Assembly (NCBI RefSeq): GCF_006345805.1
Contig: NW_021832926.1
Location: 1 to 44,693 of the forward strand
Direction: 5' to 3'
DNA from: Octopus sinensis
Lineage: Eukaryota
Length of the DNA stretch: 44,693 bases
Made by a program: the position numbers and the translations under genes. The notes below the pieces were generated by a model, which saw nothing but the letters and a program-made list of their open reading frames with translations, did no database searches and was not told the origin of the DNA. Below are positions 33,101 through 44,143 of the stretch, in pieces; within the stretch, counting starts at the first letter, position 1, and each line of letters begins with the position of its first letter.

Positions 33101-36100
33101 CGGCGTGCTAACGTTTGTGCCATTATCTTTGTCTTGCGATCGCAATGTTGACATCCATCAGTCGCGCAAAACCGACTTAATTGAAAAAGATTGGTAATGT
33201 TCAGATTACCTTTTCAAGAACCTCCCTGGCTTCCAGATTTGCAATGCCCTCCCAAAATGAAGCTTCTCAGACATCCACACAAGAACCGAATCCCATCACT
33301 CTATTGAACGATAAGGAGACGATTTTATGTCTAACATGGGCCTCCTACATGTAGGTCAGTGACCACATGCTTCGAACCTGTCACGTCTGTACACTTAACT
33401 CCTTTCCATCGCCGCGAGGTTTCCGAATAAGAAAGTGAGTTAAAAGTTATAGCAGCCGTGTCCGTGCAAAACGTGAGCTGTGCTTGTGTAAAATTTTAGA
33501 TCCAATAAGGCTCCCACGACACTTCACGGACACCCTCCATCCTATTGACATGATCCAGAGACAAGTCGAGTCAAGATATCTAGTGCGAATATGGGGCTTA
33601 GGCTCAGAAATGTGGGGGCGCTATGAATACATGCGTAAACTAAAGATTGCCCAAACTTCCAGTGACCATTCCCTGCATGTCCGGTTTTATATCGAAGTGA
33701 CCTTCTCCCAGAGACATGTTTTAGCAAAAGCTAAAGGGTTCCCCACTCCCAGTGGTCTTCTAGCACCCAGGGCATTAACCCAGAATTTCTGGGTTAATGC
33801 GAGTCGGTGAGATGTCAACAGCTATCTGAAGAAAGTTATTCAATTTGAGTATTTTGAATGTAATTGTTGCATGAATTGACAAGGCTCTATAATTGTAATG
33901 CAAACACACACACGCACTCAAACTCACACACGTACGCGCACGCACGCACGCACGCACGCACGCACACACACACACACACACACACACACACACACAGACA
34001 CACACACACACATACACACACGCACATACACTCTCCTCAATGGGAACTGTTTATTATACTTCTGAATACACTTCACTCTTAAAAACAGACTGGATGATCA
34101 CGGCTGGAGTGTCATTGATCATACACTAAGAACTAAAAGTTATACGTCACTTACACACACTCACACACTCACACACACACTCACACACACACACACACAC
34201 GCACACACACACCACACACACATATACATACATATATGGCTGTGTGGACAATAACACTGACTTTAGAAGTTTTGTGTTCTCAGGTTTTCCGATGTGAAAA
34301 GTCCCAAATGGACGCGATTTCAACGTTGTTTCCAACTTGATGAAACTATTTCATTTAGTTTAATGTATTAACTTCTTTATTCAGTTAAGTTGTCACGTGT
34401 ATTCACACACACACACATACACATACACACACATACAAACACATACACACACAAACACACACACACACTCTCTCACACACATGCACCCATACAACTCATT
34501 TAGCAGCGAAAGAAGAAGGTATACTTACATAAATAGGCGGCGACCATTGATGTTAGACTTATCAGGATACTGATCACCAGCCACATATTGAACACTGAAA
34601 GACATAAAGAGAAATATCCAGATGAGAGCATGCGTGCGCGCGTGTGTGCATGTGTACAGTGTGTGTGCGTGCGCGTGCACAAGTGTGTGTTTGTGAATGT
34701 CTGTGTATATTTATTTCTTTACTACCCACAAGGGGCTAAACATACAGGGGACAAACAAGGACAGACAAACGGATTAAGTCAATTACATCGACCCCAGTGC
34801 GTAACTGGTACTTATTTAATCGACCCAGAAAGTATGAAAGGAAAAGTCGACCTCGGCGGGATTTGAACTCAGAACGTAAAGACAGACGAAATACCTCTTT
34901 CTTTACTACCCACAAGGGGCTAAACACGGAGGTGACAAACAAGGACAGACAATGTGATTAAGTTGTTTACTTATTTAATCGATCCCGAAAGGATGAAAGG
35001 CAAAGTCGACCTCGGTGGAATTCGAACTCAGAACGTAAGAACAGACGAAATACCTATTTCTTTACTACCCACAAGGGGCTAAACACAGAGAGGACAAACA
35101 AGGACAGACAAAGGGATTAAGTCGATTATATCGACACCAGGGCGTAACTGGTACTTATTTAATCGACCCCGAAATGATGAGAGGCAAAGTCGAACTCGGC
35201 AGAATTTGAACTCACAACGTAGCGGCAGACGAAATACCGCTAAGCATTTCGCCTGGCGTGCTAACGTTTCTGCCAGCTCGCCGTCTTAACAATGCATAAT
35301 ATAAATTGATAGAGAAATGAGATGAGGACACAAGTTACGTAATCACCTTCATTACTTTACAGCTGTTTCGGCTTTAAAGAAGTGTGCGACATGTTATATA
35401 GTTAAGGCTGTGATGAAAGTAAAAGATGTTACAATCAGACTAAACTCTCAGTGTCGAAACAACTGTAAGCTAATGAAGGTGATTAAAACTGTTATTTTGT
35501 TATCCATCTCTTAACATATATGTATATAATATATTATATATATATATTATATATATATATATATATATATAATAGTATATATATATATATATATATATAT
35601 ATATATATATATTATAGTACTATATATATATTATATATATATAGTAGTATGTAGTATGTAAGTATGTAAGTATATATATATATATATATATAATATATAT
35701 ATATATATATATATATAATATATATATTATATATATATATATAGCGGTTCGGCAAAGGTTCGGAAAGAAACCGATAGAATAAGTACAGGGCTTAAAAAAA
35801 GATAAAGTCCTGAGGTGTCGATTTAGTCGATAAAAAATCCCTTGAAGGTTGTGCTCCAGCATGGCCGCAGTTAAATGACCGACACAAGTAAAAGAATACA
35901 GTTGTGTTTATGTGTATATATATATATATATATATATATTATATATATATATAATATATATATATATATATGCTAGAGTTGAACTAGGGACAGCTGATGA
36001 GGTGATTTTTCCTTGTGTAGTTGTCTTTCTGTTGTAAAAAAATGGTTTGTTCCATGCTTGTTTTTCCGTTTTCGTTTCTCGTTGAGTTCTACTTCTAGTT

Positions 36101-44143: not shown

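Follow-up and report, generated by a model that had tools for sequence, protein, structure and literature searches.

The receptor tyrosine kinase (RTK) ALK has known ligands in vertebrates (ALKAL), flies (Jeb) and nematodes (HEN-1). To our knowledge, every described ALK or LTK binds its ligand through a glycine-rich/EGF module; structures of ALK/LTK-ALKAL complexes from 2021 reportedly show the glycine-rich/TNF-like module binding the ligand, and we know of no settled role for the MAM-LDLa-MAM half of ALK. In ALK and LTK alike, the glycine-rich/TNF-like module is what is conserved of the ectodomain (PMC10605310). Activation of human ALK by FAM150/ALKAL needs the glycine-rich region, and single glycine substitutions in the module abolish the function of fly Alk (PMC4658194). 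A Jeb-like gene has been reported in the mollusc Aplysia (PMC7851593); a survey of ALK and LTK evolution has Aplysia as its sole mollusc and leaves octopus unmentioned. Here we describe a gene on a 44,693-nt stretch of Octopus sinensis DNA (herein the window), which is the complete contig VCDQ01002061.1 of assembly GCA_006345805.1. The gene very probably encodes a real, single-pass RTK, descended from ALK and conserved across the genus Octopus, in which a stalk of 53 residues, carrying four N-glycan sequons, replaces the TNF-like/glycine-rich/EGF module. Octopus proteins from this gene are already public under the names “ALK tyrosine kinase receptor-like” and “uncharacterized”; a full-text literature search found no paper on the octopus accessions, nor on an ALK-family member that naturally lacks the module.

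The canonical invertebrate ALKs (Drosophila Alk, Caenorhabditis elegans SCD-2 and the ALK-like proteins of Mytilus, Liolophura and Aplysia) share with the octopus gene an ALK-type kinase, an NPxY motif, a single transmembrane (TM) helix and the LDLa-MAM2 pair. They differ from it between MAM2 and the TM helix, where canonical ALKs have ∼335 to 380 residues of TNF-like/glycine-rich/EGF sequence (PF12810) and the octopus gene has the 53-residue glycosylated stalk. A single partial gene is annotated on the contig, on the minus strand from 44143 down to ∼12074. MAM2 reaches its C-terminal end in exon B (42139..42233, 95 nt, phase 1 end), which tblastn aligns with spider ALK MAM2 (E 4e-4, 49% identity). 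Two phase 1-1 exons make up the stalk: exon C (41623..41727, 105 nt), with the sequons NGS, NAT and NSS and one Cys, and exon D (40963..41016, 54 nt), with the sequon NGS. After an intron of 6368 nt (34595..40962), the site at which canonical ALKs have their TNF-like/glycine-rich/EGF exons, the phase 1-1 exon E (34529..34594, 66 nt) encodes the hydrophobic TM helix, and the stop-transfer sequence FWKRRQR follows in exon F. A first-pass annotation of this DNA had proposed the minus-strand exon coordinates, the 105- and 54-nt linkers and the four sequons, all of which match the RefSeq model on the contig, XP_029655837.2, exactly. It had also pointed to the clean joining of phases; exons B, C, D and E are indeed joined in phase 1, and intron ends are GT..AG throughout, but with B to E all phase 1-1 this is weak evidence on its own. 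When the stretch from B to E was scanned for phase 1-1 exons under relaxed criteria, nothing came up besides C, D and a shortened form of D except one weak candidate, which starts inside dispersed-repeat sequence. Exon C was the top-scoring candidate of that scan and is present in all octopus gene models.

On either side of this region the gene continues with recognizable ALK-type exons. Exon A (43971..44143, 173 nt), the first of the partial gene model, encodes the middle of MAM2 and ends with VINVTY in phase 2; it matches Pfam MAM and aligns with the MAM2 of spider and chiton ALK. The C-terminal half of MAM that the window encodes lies above the Pfam cut-off (PF00629, 28.1 bits, profile positions 75 through 157 of 158). 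Three further exons, beyond the span of the first-pass annotation, came from a tblastn search that used human ALK from the juxtamembrane region into the kinase as the query, each residue of which had been verified against PDB 7nx3 and 4fob. Exon F (28597..28798, 202 nt, phase 1 to phase 2) encodes the juxtamembrane region, FWKRRQR...INPTY...LPRSHVYLV, with its NPxY motif; exon G (26406..26496, 91 nt) runs from the kinase glycine loop to the catalytic lysine (VAVK); and exon H (12078..12142, 65 nt), in the kinase N-lobe, is the last exon on the contig. All three are on the minus strand, as are A to E. The eight exons spliced together give 283 residues, identical at 283 of 283 positions to XP_029655837.2, so the exon set is not a chance reading. 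The glycine loop reads GEVFQG in O. sinensis (26463-26465, minus strand, codon ttc) and GEVYQG in O. vulgaris and O. bimaculoides; divergence between species, polymorphism and sequencing error are all possible causes. A 558-residue O. sinensis partial model, from the mid C-lobe through the C-terminal tail, sits on a separate contig of 20,471 nt; as the window contig also begins and ends within the gene, the O. sinensis gene is split over assembly pieces.

The module was sought in the window in several ways. A tblastn search with human ALK residues 648 through 1030 gave only poly-glycine matches in simple repeats far from the MAM2-to-TM interval and, with low-complexity filtering, nothing below E 0.9. 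With ALK fragments from mussel, chiton, spider, isopod, moth and other animals, tblastn matches in the window fell only on exons A, B, F, G and H. We then relied on a profile of 57 TNF-like/glycine-rich/EGF modules from ALK and LTK, the EGF-like part included and mussel held out, which was run with filters off, in six frames, on all stop-to-stop segments of 8 codons or more. Its best score over the whole window was 8.2 bits, on a simple repeat at 8162-7956, and within 34595-42138 it reached at most 1.1 bits. Sensitivity was gauged with the held-out mussel module, whose actual exons encode 34 to 62 residues each: 35-residue fragments scored a median of 21 bits, 80% of them above 8.2 bits, and 50-residue fragments a median of 33 bits, 95% of them above that level. 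The silence of the profile together with this control indicates that a recognizable module is absent from the whole contig. The earlier claim that the interval holds no TNF-like, glycine-rich or EGF exon is thus borne out by tblastn and profile alike, and the tBLASTn comparison it suggested, ALK residues from the TNF-like to the EGF region against the interval, found nothing. Pfam also found nothing in the three minus-strand frames of 34400-42300, a result to which we give no weight because the known 31-residue MAM exon B was missed too.

The same absence holds for the proteins. In the full-length O. bimaculoides and O. vulgaris proteins, Pfam calls kinase, MAM and a weak LDLa and finds no PF12810; the 57-sequence profile gives −1 bits for the octopus proteins (five models) vs. 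233 to 322 bits for the mussel, chiton, spider and another animal ALK. Nor does the profile match an EGF-like module next to the membrane; the 53-residue stalk there contains just one Cys and matches nothing in Pfam. By sequence, then, the octopus receptor lacks the membrane-proximal PF12810 domain by which an ALK/LTK ectodomain is recognized, yet keeps the kinase and, it appears, LDLa-MAM2. We also considered stalk exon C as a remnant of an FTTCG-type TNF-like start; the profile yields no alignment to it whatever, and the idea was dropped.

The interval was described by the first-pass annotation as almost all repeat. Within-window evidence puts 37% of the 6368-nt intron in tandem repeats and 59% in sequence with other copies in the window, 63% falling in one or the other; a repeat content of at least 63% is therefore shown, and “almost all” overstates it, as for ∼2.2 kb neither kind of repetition is shown. 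This remainder includes a 748-nt block (39237-39984), the largest stretch of the intron without other copies in the window, which contains three ORFs of ∼58 codons in one minus-strand frame, separated by short stop-containing gaps. Considered as hidden exons, these ORFs match neither Pfam nor the glycine-rich profile and were rejected.

The architecture recurs in other octopus species. With the juxtamembrane exon as the query, exactly as it stands in the window, a search of 1.84 billion representative proteins gave one relevant match, O. vulgaris CAI9730647.1 (“ALK tyrosine kinase receptor-like”, 1144 residues), whose residues 417 through 482 are 100% identical to exon F. Clustered with it are O. 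bimaculoides XP_052827396.1 (1187 residues), the older entries XP_014790236.1 and A0A0L8FFQ9, and two O. sinensis partial models. In O. vulgaris the gene takes up 111 kb of a 100-Mb chromosome, and in O. bimaculoides 129 kb of an 81-Mb chromosome. Common to the octopus proteins are the junctions ...IAIDDIS(L/M)SPECFAQ, 53-residue stalk, TM helix, FWKRRQR; the MAM-stalk-TM ectodomain that had been proposed from the window is accordingly found in O. bimaculoides and O. vulgaris as well. The full order in O. bimaculoides is signal peptide (a hydrophobic N terminus read by eye as such), MAM-like region, LDLa, MAM2, 53-residue glycosylated stalk, TM helix and ALK-type kinase, ending in a long low-complexity tail; past the signal peptide the ectodomain has ∼418 residues and 13 N-glycan sequons. 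Identity between O. sinensis and O. bimaculoides is 67/67 in the juxtamembrane region, 51/53 in the stalk, 83/89 in the MAM2 half and 19/22 in the TM helix; with 51 of 53 residues identical, the stalk exons behave like coding sequence.

Two further searches were less informative. A word-index protein search, which returned proteins of up to 616 residues, found no match to the 164-residue ectodomain and, for the TM helix, juxtamembrane region and N-lobe, only three short arthropod-like ALK fragments; it missed the 1144-residue octopus protein, 97 to 100% identical to the query, and its negatives do not cover long proteins. Logan fragments of the glycine-rich domain were tried as a clue to paralogue or orthologue status; they group with arthropod-like, not mollusc, sequences and are uninformative on octopus. 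The 90% cluster of CAI9730647.1 also contains two unrelated 56-residue Logan peptides, probably a clustering artefact.

Descent from ALK, as the first-pass annotation had it, is supported by both halves of the protein. Against the PDB, window exons F to H score 54 bits with human ALK, 37 bits with the insulin receptor and 28 to 32 bits with ROS1; the human ALK alignment is gapless over 86 residues from the NPxY motif onward, and juxtamembrane INPTY aligns with human YNPNY. The kinase of the full-length orthologue scores 368 bits with human ALK, 301 bits with ROS1 and 255 bits with IGF1R, is identical to human ALK at 155 of 288 positions (54%) with no gaps, and keeps VAVK, HRDIAARN, DFG and the YxxxYY activation loop (YRSDYY). 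On the extracellular side, the MAM2 half in the window scores 32 bits with spider ALK MAM2, 20 bits with chiton ALK MAM2 and 17 bits with the best non-ALK MAM in the PDB (MDGA1). MAM2 of the full-length orthologues reaches 77 bits in Pfam, and the orthologue LDLa-MAM2 can be aligned with spider ALK (125 bits) and with chiton ALK (82 bits), in each case over ∼220 residues; in both of these the glycine-rich domain comes directly after the matched MAM2. An unrelated receptor kinase that gained a MAM domain independently is an explanation we regard as scarcely credible. MAM is common in membrane proteins, and the window itself holds half a MAM and 51 kinase residues, which would leave such a reading some room; it would have to account, however, for human ALK being the top PDB match to the juxtamembrane/N-lobe and to the whole kinase alike, for the long LDLa-MAM2 alignment to spider ALK, for a MAM2 end that resembles invertebrate ALK MAM2 and for juxtamembrane exon phases that match mussel ALK.

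Three other explanations accept an ALK origin. That glycine-rich/EGF exons are in the genome but were collapsed in assembly, left out or missed by gene predictors seems highly improbable: the 6.4-kb intron is indeed repeat-rich and the contig a small unplaced fragment, but the window, which is rich in simple repeats, has zero N, a single contig covers MAM2 through TM without a break, and the protein junctions are identical in independent chromosome-scale assemblies of two other Octopus species. Exons that score 20 to 50 bits each would be caught by homology-based predictors, and the same error would be needed in three assemblies and several annotation efforts, which we consider unlikely. There is a slim chance that the module is supplied otherwise, by alternative isoform exons within the 110- to 130-kb gene or by a separate glycine-rich co-receptor. 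The octopus DNA that was read covers MAM2 downward only, which favors this; the canonical site of the module, the MAM2-TM interval, is nonetheless fully visible and empty, none of the genes up to 10 kb away from the ALK-like gene in O. vulgaris or O. bimaculoides encodes PF12810, and five octopus models lack the module (glycine-rich profile on five, Pfam on two). A decaying, non-functional ALK duplicate on its way to a pseudogene might likewise have lost a large piece from inside the ancestral ectodomain, be annotated “uncharacterized” in two species and leave no gene-calling-derived Logan protein fragment, as is the case here. We judge it very unlikely, since the frame is open over 1144 to 1187 residues in two species with canonical splice sites throughout, the catalytic motifs are intact in a kinase aligned gaplessly with human ALK, and the juxtamembrane region and stalk are almost unchanged between species.

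Several points do weigh against a conserved ALK-derived receptor with a stalk in place of the module. The contig is small and unplaced, and the gene on it is truncated at both ends. The orthologue LDLa scores 16.4 bits, under the Pfam cut-off of 24.1, and the N-terminal ∼140 residues of the orthologue, which lie outside the window, are MAM-like by their end motifs only, with no Pfam call. The search of 1.84 billion representative proteins with the juxtamembrane exon matched the octopus cluster only. Splicing of exons C, D and E is backed by computational gene models only, which cover three species and stem from at least three annotation efforts. What can be said of the activation mechanism is pure inference, and, given the glycine substitutions in the fly, a receptor without the whole module may signal weakly or differently (PMC4658194). 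These points notwithstanding, we retain the stalked, ALK-descended receptor as the best explanation of the locus.

Loss of the module may be understood from the ALK locus of the mussel Mytilus galloprovincialis. There, the module opens in phase 1 with its first exon and closes in phase 1 with the EGF exon, 1005 nt of coding sequence later; the juxtamembrane exon comes next, with phase 1 at its start and phase 2 at its end, the same as octopus exon F. The octopus introns from the end of MAM2 to the juxtamembrane exon are likewise all in phase 1. As the mussel block is flanked by phase-1 introns, its loss or skipping keeps the frame, and the module may have been lost from the octopus gene as one such in-frame, phase-1-bounded exon block; we infer this as an explanation of the missing module and do not offer it as a demonstration. 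No convincing candidate for the mussel TM exon was found at the locus, and the annotated mussel model has no TM exon. Part of one mussel glycine-rich-domain exon (EKIYIVVGQPGSNACSHQR) occurs as several tandem copies in the intron just downstream of that exon (8576-8912 of the mussel locus), and the annotated start of the mussel ALK model falls in another tandem repeat.

The window contains other repeats. Dispersed SINE-like repeats occupy 34699-35287, 37793-38180 and 38475-39236, with further copies elsewhere in the window and recurring translations; ARAGORN found no tRNA-like structure in them. Between kinase exons G and H, the intron of 14.3 kb contains a satellite with a ∼450-nt unit (14001-20726), in which 9.6 copies (14001-18341) are followed by 5.3 copies (18341-20726), the copies being 95 to 96% alike. 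The satellite ORFs change strand at 18341, so the second array is read as inverted, and the two arrays would make a large palindrome.

How the octopus receptor might work can be considered from its predicted parts. A hydrophobic exon of 22 to 24 residues followed by KRRQR, and an NPxY motif in the juxtamembrane region, are features of a single-pass type I membrane receptor, and the conserved VAVK, HRDIAARN, DFG and YxxxYY motifs suggest that its kinase can be activated. The receptor would thus have retained the MAM-like region, LDLa, MAM2, the TM helix, the juxtamembrane NPxY and a catalytically intact-looking ALK-type kinase. With the ALKAL-binding module missing, the receptor may be incapable of activation of the vertebrate ALK/LTK type, by a ligand that clamps two glycine-rich domains. 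A tentative alternative is that the receptor is activated instead by clustering, or by ligand binding, through MAM-LDLa-MAM; adhesion, or the use of a different ligand, may reasonably be supposed from the ectodomain that remains. The first-pass annotation had leaned toward a lineage-specific paralogue; the gene may equally be the sole octopus ALK orthologue after domain loss or a paralogue beside a canonical ALK. The more far-reaching version, that octopods have no canonical ALK, that this gene is their sole orthologue and that it signals wholly via MAM-LDLa-MAM, with a new ligand or by contact-dependent clustering, is possible but somewhat doubtful. If true, it would mean that the poorly understood MAM-LDLa-MAM half can serve as a receptor alone.

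Among receptors outside the family, neuropilin, MDGA1 and RPTP mu resemble the octopus protein in having a MAM domain near the membrane on a short stalk, and their MAM domains mediate self-association. MDGA1 and neuropilin-2 give the best non-ALK PDB matches to the octopus MAM, though weak ones (12 to 17 bits). These proteins differ in having other cytoplasmic parts and no ALK-type LDLa-MAM arrangement; the likeness bears on how the octopus receptor could work, not on the family to which it belongs. Closer in composition is the engineered human ALK-delGR, from which residues 689 through 940 were removed (PMC4658194): like the octopus receptor it combines MAM-LDLa-MAM and the kinase with no glycine-rich region. 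ALK-delGR, however, keeps the EGF-like part, whereas the octopus gene is natural, conserved between species and also without the EGF-like part.

The most instructive comparison is with mammalian LTK, another ALK-family member that lost a large block of its ectodomain while keeping an active kinase (PMC10605310), the octopus kinase being known from its sequence. LTK is the mirror image of the octopus receptor: it lost MAM-LDLa-MAM and kept the ALKAL-binding glycine-rich/EGF part, and the octopus receptor appears to have done the reverse. Questions opened by the octopus gene include whether Jeb-type ligands are used in cephalopods and how RTKs are rewired by in-frame loss of exon blocks. Just as mammalian LTK shows that the family can dispense with MAM-LDLa-MAM, the octopus receptor would be the reciprocal natural experiment, opening to test whether MAM-LDLa-MAM can bind a ligand or dimerize unaided.

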